Source of the DNA: Neoconidiobolus thromboides FSU 785
Lineage: Eukaryota > Fungi > Entomophthoromycota
Assembly: GCA_025603075.1 (NCBI GenBank)
Contig: MU626283.1
Coordinates: forward strand, 96,795 to 160,794
Direction of reading: 5' to 3'
Length of the DNA stretch: 64,000 nt
Position 1 is the stretch's first letter, and each line of letters opens with the position of its first letter. Of the stretch, positions 12,494-58,311 are shown piece after piece. The position numbers and the translations under genes were made by a program. A model generated the notes under the pieces. That model did not search any database. It had not been told where the DNA came from and was given only the letters and a program-made list of their open reading frames with translations.

Positions 12494-15400
12494 ATGAAGC
12501 AATTAAAAGAAACACGCTTGCGGTTAGAAGACATAACTTCTAATGGTTGTCCGATGAAGAGCTTATATCTAGATAAAACAGAAACTGAGATAGAAACTGG
12601 AATCAAATCGAATCAACCTGAACTAATTGAACCATTGAATAACGATTATTTTGAGTTAAAGATTGACCAAGTCATAGTTAAATTCTATATCAAAGTAGGA
12701 AGTGATAAAGATAGCCTAACTATATCAATAATTGAACAAAAGAGGGATTTAAATAGTAGTGATTTGTTTGAACAAGAAGTAATGTCTGAATCAACGACTA
12801 ATGAAATACCTTTAGTTACTCAGTTAAAAGTACATTTCAATAACAGTAAAGTATTAAAATACCAAATAGAATATAATCAACGTCATTGTTATCTTATGTG
12901 TTTATTAGATAGTTTAGAATACCAATGTTTTGAACTTAATTTAACATCTGTACCAACTGTTGGATTTAAAGAACCATTGTTATTGAAGCAGCATAGTACT
13001 TATTTAAAAAGGTATTCTGTATTTGAAATTAAATATTTTGGTATTGTGGATCTAAACTCGTTTGTAGTTTGTAATCAAAATTTCCAATTAATTTATTTTC
13101 AATTTAATTTAGATAATGGTAATTTATATTTATTTCAATCTACTTTATTTCTTAATTTTATTTTAGGAATAATTAGTTTTAAAGAATTGAAAATACCTTT
13201 TGATTTTAATTTTAATGGTTTGGTTCGTGCTTTCAATTTGAGAAATAATACCATTAATAATAATACTCAAAATCAAGTGATTCAACATAGTAATATTATG
13301 GATTATGAAGGTAATGTTAATAAAATAATTACGTTACATTGTGATGGTAAATTAAGGGTGTGGGATTTAAAGGAACAAGTTATTGTATTTCATTATCAAA
13401 TTGAGCAATTCAGTCATCAAAACAATCAAATGAATATATATTTTCACCAAAATATATATTATCTAATTGTAAGTGATAAAAATGAAAAACAAAAAGTTCA
13501 ATTTTTCATTTATAAGTTTCAAATTAGTCATATGGAGGCTGTCCACTCATTTCATTTATTAGATAAAGTAAATTATTTTAATTTAATTCAATTGAATAAT
13601 CCAGCGAATAATTGTAATACTAATGTAATAGATTTTATACTTTTATTTAATAACAATACAATTCAATTATACGGCCTTTTTGAAATTAATCAATTAAGGT
13701 ATGTTAATAGTATCAATATTAATAATTATTACAATCAACAATATAATAATAACAATGACAACATGATTGACACAAATGATAGTATAATAATCAATGAACA
13801 AATTATAAACAATAATAATAATGAATGGAATTCAATCATATTAGAAAATTCACTAGAATTAAGGATTGAAAAAAAAATTGAACAAATCAAATCACAACAA
13901 AAAATTGAAAACAACATACTTGAATTTTTATTCGAGTTATCTACATTTGGTTCTTTTATTTTACGGGATACTTATCAACGATTTATATTAAAATATAATA
14001 TCAATCATTTCCAATTAATGAATCATGGAATTAATAATAATAAGGAATCAATTTATCTAAATATTGTTAAAGCAATGAATTATTTGTTTAGCTTAGAGTT
14101 AAGTAATAATAATAATAATAATAATAATAGTGATAGTATAGAAGGTATTAAAGAGAACATATGGATTAAATTTTTAAAGTGTAGTTTAATTAGTTTAAAG
14201 AAATATGGATTACCAATTAAATTTTATTTTAGTCCTATCATAAATAATGAATTAACAACTAATAATAATAATAATGAATCATCATATTTACCTAAATTAA
14301 TTTATAATGATGGTTTAAGTTTATTTACAACAATTAATTATAGTGAATTTTTATATTATCAATTATTTAATAATCAGTTATTTAATTTAATTCACTTATT
14401 TCAATTTAATATAAACCAACAACAAGAAATTATTGTTAATACTGAAGATTATAATAATAGTTATATGAGCATAAATAATAGTAATAATGAAATAATTGTT
14501 AATGGGTATACATCGAATATTAATTTAAATCAAGATTTAATTAGTTATATGAAATTAATAGAAGTAATTGAACAAAGTATTAATGAAATACAATTACAAT
14601 TAATTGAATCTCAATTAATCGAATTATTAATTAAAAATCAAGAATTTAATTTAAATTTTATAGATGTCATTCAATATTCAATATTAAAATGGGAAGAAAA
14701 TAATCACTTATTTTTAAATCTAGAATTAGAATTGATATCTATATCCAATAATATTCATCATTTATCTATTCATCAATTTTTATTGGATTATTTATTTAAC
14801 ATTACTAACGACCAAGAAGCTAATAATAATAACAATGAAGACGAAAGTAATGAAGATTTAATTGTTAATAGTTTGTTAGAATTAAGTGAATTAAACTATT
14901 CAATTTACAGTAAATTAAATAGTCAAAGTAAATTAAGTCCAATTATAATAATTTTATTGATTACTATCAATAATAGTCAACAATTAAAAATAAATTTGAA
15001 ATTAGAAGAGGAAGAATTTAATATATTAGATTCAATTCGATATTCAACTGTTTTGATGGGAATATACCATTTATTTTTCAAGCCATTAATATTACATCAA
15101 AATCATCAAATCAATGAAGAAAATATTCAAAGTTTAATTCAATACAATAATAACCAAGAAAACCAAATGTTAATATATAATTCAATTAAAGATATTCAAC
15201 ATTCTACTTTATTTTTTGATTATTTTAAAAAGAAAGGAATAGAAATTCAATTAATGAAAGATCCCAAATTATTTATTAAACAATTATTAAATTATTTTAT
15301 ATTTAAAAAAGAAGAATCAAATAATCCATTTTATTTAATTAACGATCAAAAAACAGTAAATTCAATTTCATTGTTTTTAGCAGATTTAATTAAATATCTA

Positions 15401-17414
15401 ATTTATAACAATTATTTTGGACATTCAATCTTATTATCATTATTATGTGGTAATTATTTTTATTTTTATTGGATTCAAGGGATTATGTTCTATTTAAAAA
15501 AAGATTATTCTAAAAGTTTTGATTACTTCAAGGATGCTATTAATTTATATAGTGATTATAATAATAACAATATTAATAATAATTTATTATTAGTTAATTT
15601 AATACAAATTCAATTACCTTCATTTCACTACAATATTAATTCATCGTATTTTTTTTATTTGTTAGCTAAAAAATATCATGAAGATGGAATAACAGAATAT
15701 GCTAATTTAATTATGGAACAATCAATTAGTTTGTTTCTAGATGAAGTTAAAATAACTGATGAAGATATAATAGAAAAACAAACAAATGAATATTATTATT
15801 TTAAATTTGAGTTACAAATTGAATTAAAAAAATACGATAGTGCAGTTAATTTTATTCCATTAATTAGAAATCCAATAATTAAAAAAAAATGTATTCAAAT
15901 ATTATTAAATCATATTGTTGAACATCAATTAAATTTTGACTTAATTTATATTTCAACAGAAAGAGAATTTATTTTATTATTATTATGGGAGAAATTGATT
16001 TATTTAATTAGTAAAAATAAAGAAACAGAAACGATAGAACAATGGTTTAATGGTATATTACAATTTTATTTATTAAATTTAGATTATACGGAAGGTAAGA
16101 TATTATTATTTGTAATAAATAATATAATAATTAAATATTAATATTTCTATTTTATTAGCTGCTACCACTTTATTTCATCAAATTATTTATTATTTTACAC
16201 AATTATCTAAAGAATTCCGAGAATTTACTATTATTTTGCAAAAAATGTTAAAAAATTTTAAAGTGATTATAGAAATTATTGAACAAACTAATTTATCATT
16301 CAATTATTTTAAAATTAAAAAGGAATTTTTAAAAGAATACCAAATGTACATGTTAAATTATATTAACGAATTTGAAAAAGAAGGTAAATATTTTTATTTA
16401 TTTCAAGGTGTGAAGAATAATATTAACAAAGATGATTTTTAGGCTTACCCAATAGAATTGTGTCCTTTCAAATGGTATTAAAATATTGTGCGTTGGTACA
16501 AAGTACTTTAAAACTATATAATAATTCAATTTATGAAATTAAGAGTAAGATTGGTTATTAGTTATTATTATTATTAATAATTTTAATATATTTATCTATT
16601 TGTTAGAAAACCAATTATTAACATATAATGAAATTATTGAAGGTTATTGTTTATTAAAAAACTATACTACTTGTTTTCAATTAACTCAACTATTTGAACA
16701 AAAATTAACAAAGGTGTTCTTCATGATGATTGAAAACGTAAAGCAGCTAATAGAAGAAAAGTAAGTTTATTTAATTATAATTGTATCTATAATTATATTA
16801 ATAATATTAATTTAATGATATAGGAATAATAATAAGGATAATTTAATAAAAGAAAAGAAAGAGAATGAATTATTAAAATTATTAGAGTTAATTAAAGTTG
16901 AATTAAAGAAACAAAATGAACCAGAATATTATATTTTATTAATTCAACAATTATTGCAAGATCAAATAATGAATATAAAAGATGATTTTGTAATCAATAT
17001 ATTAAATGAGCTATATGTAAGCTATTATTCTTTATTATTCTTTATTATTTTGCTTTATATAGTAATTGTTATATTAATTATTTTTATTTTATTTTTTAAT
17101 AGGAACTGGACTTTAATCAACTAATACGTTTATTAATTTCTTATAATTATTTGGAAATTGGGTTAAAATTTACGGTAGATAAAATGAATCTTATATTATC
17201 TAATAATAATCTTAAACTTGGTTTACCAATTCTTTGTTGTGATTTATTATATAATAGTTTAAAAATTAATAATGTAAGTTTTATTTTTATTATAAAAATT
17301 TTTAATGAATAAAAATTGATATTTTATTTTTTATTTTAGGATATTGAATTGTTAAACCAATTTGAAGAGAAGATTAATTTACCATTAAAATTAAAAATGA
17401 AAGATTTGGAATAA
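12494..17414 (+). CDS. Nucleoporin Nup120/Nup160-like, Asn-rich, several 3' exons
   Basis: 1215-aa first exon with ITLHCDGKLRVWDL beta-propeller motif and helical C-terminus (YDSAVNFIPLIRNPIIKKKCIQILL); additional short exons to stop at 17414. Confidence 0.65.
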
Positions 17415-54749: not shown

Positions 54750-55656
54750 TTTAATGAACTATATTATAGATGCTATTAAGTATTAGATGATAATAATAAT
54801 TATTTTTTGATAACTATTATGAGAGTTAAGTTGGAGTATTTGTAGGATGAGCTATTGATATGCAATAGTAATAATTTTGTATATACATACTTTTGCTAAG
54901 TAAAACCCACCCTGAATTACAACTGTTAGTTGGAGTAATTATATTAATTTAGGGATAAATTTTTGACTTTGAAAATTTTGTAGTCAAGTACAAGTACTTA
55001 ATGCCAAGTTTTCAAAAATCGTAGTTTTGTCAATTTTTTAATTTTGTTGATTATGCACCCATTTTATTATATTACTAAAATCAAAGTTTAGTTTTTTAAA
55101 AATAATTATTACTATTACTATTATTAGTAATCAGAATTCCAATTTTCTTAAATGATCCTCTAACTCTTTTTGTTATATTTAAAATATGCTATTGAAATTA
55201 TTCTAAAAAAATTATTAATAAAAAAGAGGGGAAAGCAAAAAAATTTATATGGCCAAGCTTTGAGTTTAGTAAAAAAGCCATAAAGACTATAAATCAAGTA
55301 TACTAACTTTTAGAAACAGTCTCAAAGAAGTAATTTTATCTTAAGTAATAAATGTGGACTATTATTAATTTAGCTTTTGATCTAACCTTTGATGAATATT
55401 TATGTTATTATCTCAATTATCTTTATCCAAGTTGAATTTACAATATAGGCTCATTTTAGAAGATAGAGATAGCTGCCTATTTTTTAGGATTTATAAACTT
55501 AATACTACCTTTTAGCCTATTAGATTCTTCTAAGTAAGTAGTCTTCTAATTCAAAAAATAAGTTTTTATTTGCAATAGATTTTTTATTTCTATGCATCTT
55601 CAAACAAAAAAACACACTCTTATATAATAAAATTGTATAAAAATTGGTTCTGACAG

Positions 55657-55727: not shown

Positions 55728-56102
55728 ATATATTGAGTATCAAACATACTGATAGGATGTTTTTATTAATTTAGTTAATAGTCTGTTCAACTTTTACGCT
55801 TGAAAAATGGAAAATTAAATAAACCAAATAGTTGCTACATTTGAATGGATTTTTTACACCATTATTAAAGCTGTGGAAAAATAGGTTTTATTTTTATAAA
55901 TGAAATATTGGAAAATTTTAATAAAAAGATATGTACATGTAAGGACTTAATTATGAAAATAGAACATAAAAAATAAACAATAAATATATTTATTTTTGAT
56001 AAATTAATCAAAACCATTAAGGTTGTCGGTTAGTAGCATACCAATAAGGCCTAAATGACAATAATTAGTATACATTATCTTAGATAACTATATTGAATAG
56101 AT

Positions 56103-56173
56103 AAAATCAGGTTGAAAAGGGGTTAGTAATCATTAAAGTTTCAGGTGAAACACGGAATTGATCATCATTTGGA
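56103..56173 (-). ncRNA. Box C/D snoRNA 5: D' guide to LSU UGAAACACGGA; D guide CCCCUUUUCAA
   Basis: C box ATGATGA (56168-56162), D' CTGA after TTCCGTGTTTCAC, D box CTGA (56110-56107). Confidence 0.85.
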
Positions 56174-56306
56174 TTAACATAGAATTAGATTAAATACTTA
56201 CATTGAAGAGTTATGAGTCATTATATGTTTAGTTTCAAACTATATTAGGATATCTATAATAGAAGATTAATAAATTATTCAAGAATAATAGTTAATAAAA
56301 ATTCAA

Positions 56307-56390
56307 TTCATCAGATAATTTGGTAAGAGATTTATTAGCTTCATACTTGCATCAGAAGCAGAACTGACAGAAAATCAATCATCACACAAA
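56307..56390 (-). ncRNA. snR61: Box C/D snoRNA 4, snR61/SNORD38-like (LSU Am1133, yeast numbering)
   Basis: C box GTGATGA; D' guide TCTGTCAGTTCTGCTT-CTGA complementary to LSU AAGCAGAACUG; CTTACCAAA complementary to the adjacent UUUGGUAAG; D box 56314-56311. Confidence 0.85.
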
Positions 56391-56507
56391 ATTAAAAAAT
56401 TAAAAGTCGAAATAAGTACCTACCTTATTACATTTGAATTGTAATTGATAATCTAATGAGTATAAATTAGAATGATATTCTCAATAAAAATTAATGATAT
56501 TAATAGA

Positions 56508-56608
56508 AATATCAGTAACTATCCGGTTTGAATGTCTTTGGATAGGAATATAGAGCTTATCTTCAGAACTACTCAGAGCCCAGTGCTCAAATCTTTTCAT
56601 CATTTGAT
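56508..56608 (-). ncRNA. snR76: Box C/D snoRNA 3, snR76/SNORD88-like (LSU Cm2197, yeast numbering)
   Basis: C box ATGATGA; D' guide GAGCACTGGGC-T-CTGA complementary to LSU GCCCAGUGCUC; GACATTCA complementary to the adjacent UGAAUGUC; D box 56515-56512. Confidence 0.8.
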
Positions 56609-56699
56609 GAATAGGATAAGAATTGAAATTATTACTTACATCTAATAAAATAAGATTAATATAATGTTTAATATAAAATTATTTAAATTAAATAGAATC

Positions 56700-56793
56700 T
56701 GGCTCAGAGTGGTGCATGCATTGAATTGTAATCATTAGTGATTGCTCTCATTAGATTCTTAGTTCTATGGTTAATTGCATTCATCAACGCCAA
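56700..56793 (-). ncRNA. snR40: Box C/D snoRNA 2, snR40/SNORD32-like (SSU Gm1271, yeast numbering)
   Basis: TGGC/GCCA terminal stem; C box TTGATGA; D guide CATGCACCAC-T-CTGA complementary to SSU GUGGUGCAUG, +5 rule gives G1271. Confidence 0.82.
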
Positions 56794-56929
56794 CATTCTA
56801 TTCTCAATTTAAATGAAACATTTTACTTACCATTTAATCATCATGACAGTATAATAATAATGTCTGTGTTTAACATCTAATAAAATTAAATTAGTAAAAT
56901 GATCAATTAAGTATTTGACTATCATAATA

Positions 56930-57016
56930 ATCCTCAGTTGGTGATGCATGTAAAAGATTGAAATCATTAATGATCATATAGTTAGTTCTATGGTTGAATA
57001 TGTATCATCACATACG
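56930..57016 (-). ncRNA. snR55: Box C/D snoRNA 1, snR55/SNORD33-like (SSU Um1269, yeast numbering)
   Basis: C box GTGATGA (57011-57005); D guide CATGCATCACCA-A-CTGA complementary to SSU UGGUGGUGCAUG, +5 rule gives U1269. Confidence 0.82.
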
Positions 57017-58311
57017 GAAACATAGGTAAAGAAATTAACTTACATTATATACTTGATTTAGGAGCGAACAAACTTAGTTGCTAAATATAAATATACTGAC
57101 CTTAGCTAAGAAATATACTTTTATATTTTCGTTGTGGGATAGAACTAAGCTTAGGACTAAAATTTAGCCAATTAAATAAAATTTAGCTCTATTCAGATCG
57201 ATTGATTGACTTGGATTAAAACATTATGGGAACCTTTTGAATCGAAAATTGGGATTGAATTCAAAGGAAATTTCAAGAAAACTAAAGTTCAAATTCTAAA
57301 TCAATAGTTAGATAATATAATTAGACAGTTACTATTGTATATATCTCAACAATTTATTTAGATTATTATTTTGTAATACTCGTTTTCTCTTTTACTCTTT
57401 AAATTTTATAAATAAATAACAAGTTTGAGTTTAAATTAAGTCTTTATTTAAAGTAAGCAGCTAATTTGAAATATACAGTTTTTTATTCAACCATAATATT
57501 TATTTGATCCTAAAAACCACTCAATTTGGAATTTAGAATTTAGAATTAACAGAGTAACAAACTGAATTACATTTTAATAATTTAATATGTAAAAATAAAA
57601 TTTCAAAGCTGCTAACACTAAATTTTTATATGTAAAGAATAGTGATTATATTTAAAGACTGCTTATTAAATATATTATTGGCTTTAAAAGCATTTATCTT
57701 AGATATTAAACTTTTTGATGATAATAGTATTATGAGTTATCGATTCTATTATTTTAAAATATCTTAATAGGAAACAAATATTACTTTTTTTAATATTAAT
57801 GACTTAATAAGTATTTTACTATAATTCACTTGGATGATATGTCTTATTTGAAAATTATCAATTGTTAAAAAGATATTAAAAGTTGAAACTTAAATTTTTG
57901 AAAAAAATCATAAAATTTAATTTTAATAAAAAACCTCTTAATTGAAACTATTATTTATATTAAAATAATATTGTGTTTAGAAATAATAATCGAAACTTTC
58001 ATTTAAAATGAGATAAACTTTAATACTCCTATTGCTGAACTTTTGTATATTTTAAACTGATAACTTTGCTCAATCTATTTCTTTTAATAAATGTACTTAT
58101 TTCAATAGAATTCTCAAATTGGTAATGTCAAGTATTTTATTAATGTCAAATAAAAAAGTTAATTAAGATTTAATCAAATTCTTTGACTATCTTGGAACCT
58201 TTTCATAACACATAAGTTTAGTTATCATTTAAAAAATAATAATACCCTTTCTAATGTTGATGCATTATCTTTAAAAAAGTTATTAGAGGTTCTAAAATAG
58301 AATCTTCAAAT

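Follow-up and report, generated by a model that had tools for sequence, protein, structure and literature searches.

A spliced non-coding gene with five intronic box C/D snoRNA units in the fungus Neoconidiobolus thromboides

A 1.1-kb locus on the minus strand of a contig of Neoconidiobolus thromboides FSU 785 is best explained as a small, stand-alone, non-coding host gene for small nucleolar RNAs (snoRNAs) that belongs with the UHG-like hosts of fungi and carries a single box C/D snoRNA in every intron; we put the probability of this reading at about 0.9. The locus lies in a window of 64,000 nucleotides (nt) and ~25% G+C (contig MU626283.1 of assembly GCA_025603075.1, positions 96,795 to 160,794 of the forward strand; all coordinates below are positions in this window), in which the sequence between ~57095 and ~55965 reads as six short exons separated by five introns of the GT..AG type, each 151-189 nt long. 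That this stretch contains a spliced non-coding host, with five box C/D snoRNAs encoded in its introns, had been proposed from its letters alone, and the RNA joints, the lengths of the open reading frames (ORFs) and the box units bear the proposal out; the feature is real, and its mechanistic reading is very likely right. The novelty claimed for it was overstated, as intronic clusters, the snR55-snR61 pair, tiny or absent exons and stepwise splicing have all been published for fungi.

Splicing and coding capacity of the host transcript

The primary transcript measures ~1.13 kb and the spliced RNA ~267 nt. Introns 1, 2, 3 and 5 begin with the donor GTAAGT and intron 4 with GTAGGT, all five end in the acceptor TAG, and each contains a branch-like CTAAT or TTAAT whose A lies 13-14 nt from the acceptor (Table 1). 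Every intron holds exactly one unit running from a C box to a D box, and the placement of these units hardly varies: the C box starts 32-43 nt past the donor in all five introns, and from the end of the D box it is 56-62 nt to the acceptor and 42-48 nt to the putative branch A. The distance to the 3' splice site resembles the range of about 40-60 nt known from Neurospora crassa and humans, where a spacing of 41-60 nt has been reported for intronic snoRNAs (PMC2780460).

Near-identical sequence is present in nine public runs, and the assembled contigs of eight of them (X1 to X8), mapped to the locus, document the splicing of this transcript. For introns 1-4 the observed joints fall on exactly the bases that had been predicted: intron 1 (56876/57044, GT..AG on the minus strand) in X4 at a depth of 257, intron 2 (56641/56831) in the six runs X1-X6, intron 3 (56452/56831, its two sides separated by precisely the letters AT) in X1-X4, and intron 4 (56253/56424) in X1, this last joint recurring in slightly divergent copies in X1, X4, X7 and X8. 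Intron 5 is seen spliced solely in variants of 90-99% similarity, one in X7 (...AAT/GCCTTA...) and a second in X1 and X4. The runs carry four different organism labels, and since those under one of them (label D) are just 90-95% similar, the gene structure is common to at least one related strain or species.

The transcript lacks coding capacity. Before splicing, the longest ORF beginning with ATG comprises 46 codons; in the spliced RNA, which contains several ORFs of 9-17 codons, the longest has 17. The public assembly is without a called protein-coding gene between positions 54750 and 59256, in agreement with the original prediction that the locus was unannotated.

Contigs that keep introns 1, 3, 4 or 5 are present alongside the spliced forms, that with intron 3 being abundant, and they lend some support to a different route, in which the snoRNAs would come mainly from an unspliced polycistronic precursor by RNase III/Rnt1-type cleavage and trimming, with splicing as an incidental event; budding yeast processes its homologous snR57-snR55-snR61 cluster in this manner. 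We consider this route very improbable here. Each of the five units has a bona fide intron of its own, in which donor, branch motif and acceptor follow the consensus and the spacing to the branch point is nearly constant, splicing is observed at every intron (at intron 5 in the variant copies), and G+C-rich stem-loops suited to Rnt1 were not noticed between the units.

Table 1. Features of the snoRNA host gene, in order of transcription within each group (window positions)
Feature	Position	Strand	Basis and remarks
TATA-like element AATATAAAAGT	57118..57128	-	sequence; ~25-35 nt upstream of the start of RNA coverage; putative
Exon 1	57044..57095	-	5' end approximate, 3' end exact (joint 56876/57044); depth present 57025-57118
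Intron 1	57043-56877, 167 nt	-	GTAAGT...TAG; branch-like CTAAT 14 nt from acceptor; joint in X4
Exon 2	56831..56876, 46 nt	-	edges given by joints 56876/57044 and 56641/56831
Intron 2	56830-56642, 189 nt	-	GTAAGT...TAG; joint 56641/56831 in X1-X6
2-nt microexon AT	56640..56641	-	between introns 2 and 3; letters AT inside joint 56452/56831 in X1-X4
Intron 3	56639-56453, 187 nt	-	GTAAGT...TAG; often kept once intron 2 is gone
Exon 4	56424..56452, 29 nt	-	joints at 56452 and 56424
Intron 4	56423-56254, 170 nt	-	GTAGGT...TAG; joint 56253/56424 in X1
Exon 5	56202..56253, 52 nt	-	joint at 56253; 3' edge deduced from donor GTAAGT at 56201 and variant contigs
Intron 5	56201-56051, 151 nt	-	GTAAGT...TAG; spliced in variant copies only
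Exon 6 (last)	55965..56050	-	3' end approximate; AATAAA near 55996-55991
snoRNA A, snR55/U33-like	56931..57018	-	C box GTGATGA 57011-57005; D box CTGA 56937-56934
snoRNA B, snR40/U32-like	56698..56794	-	C box TTGATGA 56787-56781; D box CTGA 56707-56704
snoRNA C, snR76/snoR118-like	56509..56607	-	C box ATGATGA 56603-56597; D' CTGA 56576-56573; D CTGA 56515-56512
snoRNA D, snR61/U38 family	56308..56390	-	C box GTGATGA 56385-56379; D' CTGA 56355-56352; D CTGA 56314-56311
snoRNA E	56102..56176	-	C box ATGATGA 56168-56162; D' CTGA 56144-56141; D CTGA 56110-56107

Box C/D units and predicted rRNA targets

The C box is canonical (RUGAUGA) in four of the five units, named A to E in Table 1, and all five carry a terminal CTGA. 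Terminal stems are clear in B and D and short in A; the stem of B (TGGC/GCCA, extended in the fold by AGAAT/ATTCT) is the best of the five. In Rfam, unit D is a full-length match (1-85) to RF00476 (snR61/Z1/Z11) with 55.1 bits against a gathering score of 45, while A, B and C match the families expected of them at scores below the threshold. A and B reach 25.6 and 24.1 bits with RF00133 (Z195/SNORD33/SNORD32; gathering score 44); the conserved 3' guide block of this family, CAUGCAC.ACC, is aligned in both and their predicted targets are the family's sites, so that A and B would work like SNORD33/32, membership by score not being reached. C scores 26.7 bits with RF01424 (snoR118; gathering score 44), and in its D' guide, GCACUGGGCUCUGA, it does not depart from the consensus. 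The best that E offers is 20.2 bits with U18 (RF01159), against a gathering score of 47, next to other chance-level matches.

The guides were compared with the ribosomal RNA (rRNA) sequences of other eukaryotes, using 120 environmental contigs of ribosomal DNA (rDNA) found in a metagenome scan for the LR3 primer site; three rDNA contigs annotated with Rfam, L052 and L011 among them, served for the numbering of targets. All five guides form duplexes of 10-14 base pairs (bp) at invariant rRNA sites, in register with box D or D' by the fifth-nucleotide rule. In the following the hyphen stands directly after the target nucleotide. The D guide of A, ACATGCATCACCAA, pairs with 18S UGGU-GGUGCAUG (equivalent of U1269) through 11 Watson-Crick pairs and one G-U pair in 27 rDNA contigs, and the D guide of B, CATGCACCACT, with 18S GGUGG-UGCAUG (equivalent of G1271) through 10 Watson-Crick pairs and one G-U pair in 29. 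In the large subunit (LSU), the D' guide of C, GAGCACTGGGCT, pairs with GCCC-AGUGCUC (equivalent of 25S C2197; 11 Watson-Crick pairs, 31 rDNA contigs), and the D' guide of D with AAGCA-GAACUGGCG (equivalent of 25S A1133; 12 Watson-Crick and two G-U pairs), exactly in 39 rDNA contigs and with one added G-U pair in 13 more. The D' guide of E, TCCGTGTTTCA(C), forms 11 Watson-Crick pairs with LSU UGAA-ACACGGA, a target 3 nt 5' of the U18 site; its count of 113 rDNA contigs is circular, as the pattern used to fetch them contains the site of E.

In the numbering of L052 the targets of A and B are positions 1269 and 1271 of the small subunit (SSU); in that of L011 the target of A is SSU 1265, those of D, C and E are LSU 1112, 2157 and 631, and the U18 position is 634. 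These sites are familiar ones. Yeast S1269 and S1271 belong to snR55 and snR40, and L2197 to snR76 (PMC3116282). The N. crassa table gives 18S-Um1265 for snR55/U33, 26S-Am1114 for snR61/U38, 26S-Cm2159 for snR76/HBII-180 and 26S-Am635 for U18, with which the L011 positions agree within one or two positions. In Arabidopsis, 25S C2198 is assigned to SnoR118 (PMC8053127), in agreement with the Rfam lead for C, and in humans 28S Am1310 is assigned to SNORD126 (PMC9941101). Judged by its guide, E would address the equivalent of this human Am1310/SNORD126 site, three residues 5' of the U18 site, which is A661 in Arabidopsis. Human U18 guides A1313. The E site is listed in neither of the methylation tables consulted for Arabidopsis and N. 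crassa, and we know of no methylation at this position in budding yeast. Rfam, rDNA pairing and published target tables together uphold the earlier assignment of the guides as snR55-, snR40-, snR76- and snR61-like plus one for the SNORD126 site. The description of E as SNORD126-like holds for its target and fails for its sequence, which gave no Rfam match to the SNORD126 family at E-values up to 10.

A few further assignments were considered. E was rejected as a homologue of U18, because its register is displaced: with three extra nt before the D' box, its target comes to lie 3 nt further 5'. For the D-box guides of C and E the eukaryotic rDNA contigs yielded no convincing conserved rRNA target, none of the five units matches snR57 in Rfam, and no guide matched a further conserved SSU site. 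For the D-box region of D the best match, UAAAUUGGUAAGA, was found 76 nt 5' of the main site; it was set aside, as it looks like a by-product of likeness to the true accessory site UUUGGUAAG.

A control over the whole window indicates how often such arrangements arise by chance. On both strands it contains 275 CTGA sites, eight of which are preceded by at least 10 nt of perfect rRNA complement; four of the eight fall in the 1.1-kb locus, and those four alone have TGATGA upstream. The fifth unit, A, stays outside this control just by the one G-U pair in its duplex. By this measure the locus is more than chance.

In addition to the main guides, units A to D contain accessory elements that can pair beside the target. 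A and B share an identical 14-nt block, AACCATAGAACTAA (in A at 56995-56982), and a similar C' region, in introns whose remainder is barely alignable, a pattern compatible with local duplication. One part of the block, CCATAGAA, matches as its complement UUCUAUGG, a variant common in eukaryotic 18S rRNA immediately 5' of the target; another, AACTAA (AACTAA(GAA); AACTAAGAA in B), is complementary to (UUC)UUAGUU just 3' of it. In the 18S rRNA of this species the target of A and B would be expected to have UUCUAUGG and UUCUUAGUU as its flanks. The accessory element of C, GACATTCA, pairs with UGAAUGUC directly 3' of its target, and that of D, CTTACCAAA, with UUUGGUAAG directly 5' of its target; the latter element falls on UACCAAA, a conserved stretch of the snR61 consensus in Rfam. 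Taken singly the accessory matches stand only modestly above shuffled sequence, 90, 42, 129 and 13 of 2000 shuffles reaching them (13 for D). Extra base-pairing beside the methylation site is known for snR61 and snR76 and, in most yeasts, for snR40 and snR55, and it stimulates methylation (PMC3116282). That the 14-nt element shared by A and B serves as a D' methylation guide was rejected, as 8-9 bp are too few and the element fits the published extra base-pairing (PMC3116282). Its reading as a sign of an unusual 18S rRNA was likewise rejected as unnecessary.

Outside the host gene, the plus strand at 54846-54925 shows GTAAAACCCACC directly before a CTGA, an 11-nt perfect LSU complement (at ~1600 in L011), together with a 5-bp stem TTGTA/TACAA and AGGATGA at the place of the C box. 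This could be one more C/D snoRNA, its C box being a variant, but as a candidate it is weak, and Rfam gives no support at 54846-54925.

The two-nucleotide exon, copies and surroundings of the gene

Between introns 2 and 3 the exon is reduced to two nucleotides. Fully spliced contigs read ...TTAAATG-AT-ATTATC..., and in the DNA the AT (56641-56640) is directly followed by GTAAGT. The sequence offers no shifted donor or acceptor able to supply these two letters, so that the acceptor at 56642 and the donor at 56639 are both used. Partly spliced forms bear on the order of events: contigs covering 56424-56641 joined to 56831 onward, in which intron 2 is removed and intron 3 kept, occur in X2-X6, and X7 and X8 keep intron 3 while intron 4 is spliced out. 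The reverse form, with intron 3 removed and intron 2 retained, is found in none of the contigs of the eight runs. Since the one form is seen and the reverse never, we conclude with moderate confidence that introns 2 and 3 are removed stepwise in the 5'-to-3' direction, intron 2 first.

Small or absent internal exons are known from fungal snoRNA clusters, in which juxtaposed introns give only upstream-first products, read either as stepwise 5'-to-3' splicing or, alternatively, as a choice of acceptor (PMC3596301); as cited there, the 'complex introns' of such clusters, whose internal exons are tiny or of zero length, go back to Mitrovich et al. 2010. The present case is likewise one of two juxtaposed snoRNA introns with upstream-first intermediates only. 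It differs in that a 2-nt exon persists in the final product. Because the AT is kept, the second donor is demonstrably used, something that with exons of zero length is indistinguishable from alternative acceptor choice; the AT thus speaks for the stepwise reading. At even odds, in our estimate, the AT exon is the natural footprint of obligatory recursive splicing: removal of intron 2 would join exon 2 to AT and so give the donor of intron 3 a usable 5' exon, intron 3 would be recognisable only once exon 2 and AT stand before its donor, and the RNA retaining intron 3 would be a kinetic intermediate. If this is true, the retained AT settles the ambiguity between stepwise splicing and alternative acceptors that attaches to zero-length exons in other fungal snoRNA clusters, and the output of snoRNA C could depend on the rate of the first splicing step. 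In any event the 2-nt exon is a neat natural test case for stepwise splicing.

Copies of the locus with 90-99% similarity were compared through difference tables, and the comparison is indicative. The copies agree with this allele in the C and D boxes, in the main guides and in that part of the accessory element which pairs. Where letters differ, they do so in exons 5 and 6, in the flanks of the introns, in the spacers and in the sequence flanking the units on their 5' side. Among the differences are a change in the CTAA after the accessory element of A and one additional A in the run of A's that precedes the C box of C. The extra A (56602-56603) is present relative to the window in X1-X4 and X6; X5 agrees with the window, and X7 and X8 have a different 1-nt insertion nearby. 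It represents either strain variation or a homopolymer error of the assembly. Some variant contigs (56865-57076 and 56016-56255; X1, X2, X3, X4 and X7) match the locus at 90-97% and then diverge into unlike sequence, and there is probably a second, diverged copy or allele of the host with the same intron layout in the genome or in relatives. The end of an X2 contig beyond 57062 was considered as an upstream exon and dismissed, its sequence being absent from the window; it probably stems from a paralogous or allelic copy.

The contigs that retain intron 3 are the deepest of the locus and have the highest depth in most runs, contig depth being a poor measure of abundance. Together with the several short ORFs they could be taken to mean that the snoRNAs are passengers and that the spliced RNA or the intron-3-retaining isoform is itself functional, acting as a long non-coding RNA in regulation or giving rise to a micropeptide. 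The longest of these ORFs has just 17 codons, the exons seem to vary between near-identical copies more than the snoRNA cores do, and the spliced RNAs of fungal snoRNA hosts are reported to be poorly conserved and non-coding. We give such a function hardly any credence.

At the 5' end of the gene, RNA contig depth starts in the bin 57072-57118, downstream of the TATA-like AATATAAAAGT, which may be part of an RNA polymerase II (Pol II) promoter. Depth ends near the AATAAA at ~55996-55991; the contigs at exon 6 reach 56016 and then continue for 52-67 nt in variant form. An 11-nt motif, GCTAAATTTTA, occurs twice on the minus strand (57158-57168 and 57177-57187), 19 nt apart and ~30-60 nt upstream of the TATA-like element. 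The 64-kb window holds no further copy, and two matches were reached in 3 of 100 shuffles; the pair may be a promoter element, its A/T core resembling the RRPE motifs of ribosome biogenesis. A scan for promoters and terminators of the bacterial type gave nothing above shuffles and is irrelevant to a eukaryote. Elsewhere in the window, Pfam identifies ORFs for a Zn2Cys6/Fungal_trans transcription factor and an ARG5,6-type fusion protein, and an uninterrupted ORF of 1215 codons (12494-16141, plus strand) runs through DNA of only 18-22% G+C, with a faint match to the Nup120 HEAT repeats that makes it a coding sequence of extreme AT-richness.

Processing of the transcript and relation to known snoRNA hosts

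The following course of events would account for the locus. A primary transcript from ~57095 to ~55965 on the minus strand, presumably made by Pol II, is spliced at the five GT..AG introns. By what is established for intronic snoRNAs, the C/D kink-turn would be bound, while splicing proceeds, by the core proteins of the small nucleolar ribonucleoprotein (snoRNP). After debranching of the excised lariat, exonucleases would trim it back to the snoRNP, releasing five RNAs of ~75-100 nt. With fibrillarin/Nop1 these would direct 2'-O-methylation at the equivalents of 18S U1269 (A), 18S G1271 (B), 25S C2197 (C) and 25S A1133 (D), and E would do so at the 25S A three nt 5' of the U18 site. The accessory pairing of A-D beside their targets may assist, as such extra base-pairing stimulates methylation, and the spliced RNA of ~267 nt is most likely a by-product.

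Several observations weigh against this reading. Mature RNAs of 75-100 nt appear in none of the eight runs, which consist of assembled contigs of unrecorded library type; the coverage over snoRNAs A, C, D and E could derive from unspliced precursor, and over the unit of snoRNA B (the interior of intron 2, 56696-56789) contig depth is zero in all eight. For intron 5 of the exact allele the spliced form was not seen, and X1 has an unspliced contig. Both transcript ends are approximate, and as the repeat at 55968-55997 was skipped in read mapping, a longer 3' extension is possible. The order of splicing rests on the presence of contigs, not on kinetics. The complementarity of the guides was tested on the rDNA of eukaryotes other than this species. 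Of the five units, four stay below the gathering scores of Rfam, and for E there is no matching family; the C box of B is UUGAUGA, with U for R at the first position and the UGAUGA core intact; C and E have a very short terminal stem at most; and none of the five thermodynamic folds is more stable than shuffles. Weak fold stability is usual for C/D snoRNAs and uninformative.

Some of these points would also fit the view that certain units, especially B or E, are decayed copies or chance look-alikes of C/D snoRNAs that do not accumulate: B has no contig coverage and a non-consensus first base in its C box, and E is without an Rfam family and has an orphan D guide. Yet B possesses the best terminal stem of the five, a guide with 10 Watson-Crick pairs in register for the known G1271 site and an accessory element in common with A, and where an intron is removed efficiently, a lack of coverage tells little about a non-polyadenylated RNA, the libraries being of unrecorded type. 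E, for its part, has 11 Watson-Crick pairs in register with a site that is methylated in humans. Decay or chance resemblance seems unlikely to us, and five snoRNAs in one host gene remain the preferred reading.

The host gene adds a fully resolved, RNA-supported non-coding gene and five methylation guides to an assembly that has no gene call there. It also predicts five methylated rRNA positions, one of which, the E site, is methylated in humans (28S Am1310). Current understanding is unchanged by it, in that organisation, accessory base-pairing and mode of splicing all have published precedents. The first proposal had named as precedents just the vertebrate GAS5/SNHG hosts and the yeast polycistron. 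Its framing of the locus as something hidden and new is not supported, given the non-coding, UHG-like hosts with one C/D snoRNA per intron published for N. crassa (PMC2780460) and the snR57-snR55-snR61 cluster, which is intronic in Euascomycetes, Basidiomycota and Rhizopus oryzae (PMC3596301).

The UHG-like hosts of N. crassa and the vertebrate GAS5/UHG/SNHG genes are of the same multi-intron, non-coding type, with one snoRNA per intron and partly spliced isoforms; the present gene is much smaller, with ~1.1 kb and a spliced RNA of 267 nt, and the 5'TOP feature that marks the vertebrate hosts may have no bearing on it. Co-hosting of U33- and U32-type guides, whose 18S targets lie two nt apart, had been compared with human RPL13A, and it is documented for that gene (SNORD32A, SNORD33, SNORD34 and SNORD35A), which encodes a ribosomal protein, whereas the host described here is non-coding. 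Adjacent introns, as had been stated for the pair in RPL13A, are not supported, U32 and U33 sitting there in introns 2 and 4. Human SNORD126 shares with E the predicted target nucleotide, and the likeness is functional only, sequence similarity being undetected in Rfam.

Among the closest known systems is the intronic fungal cluster II (CD34/CD38 of N. crassa, chromosome IV; PMC2780460), which has the same type of non-coding host, with no long ORF in the spliced RNA. In cluster II the snR55 homologue lies upstream of the snR61 homologue, and the same order, which had been pointed out from the sequence, is found here, A (57018-56931) preceding D (56390-56308) on one spliced transcript. The guide for U1269 is listed at D' in N. 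crassa CD34 and stands at the terminal D box in A, as in animal U33. Unlike cluster II, the present gene has no snR57-type guide, a loss that has been published for several fungi (PMC3596301), and hosts three guides more: one snR40/U32-like, one snR76-like and one directed at the SNORD126 site. According to 'The fungal snoRNAome', the snR76-containing cluster of Ascomycota was formed at the root of that phylum from previously dispersed genes, so that another location of an snR76-like guide in another fungus is unsurprising. Overall, the composition of the cluster is unlike that of the three conserved fungal clusters described so far, and it provides raw material for reconstructing how snoRNA clusters were assembled.

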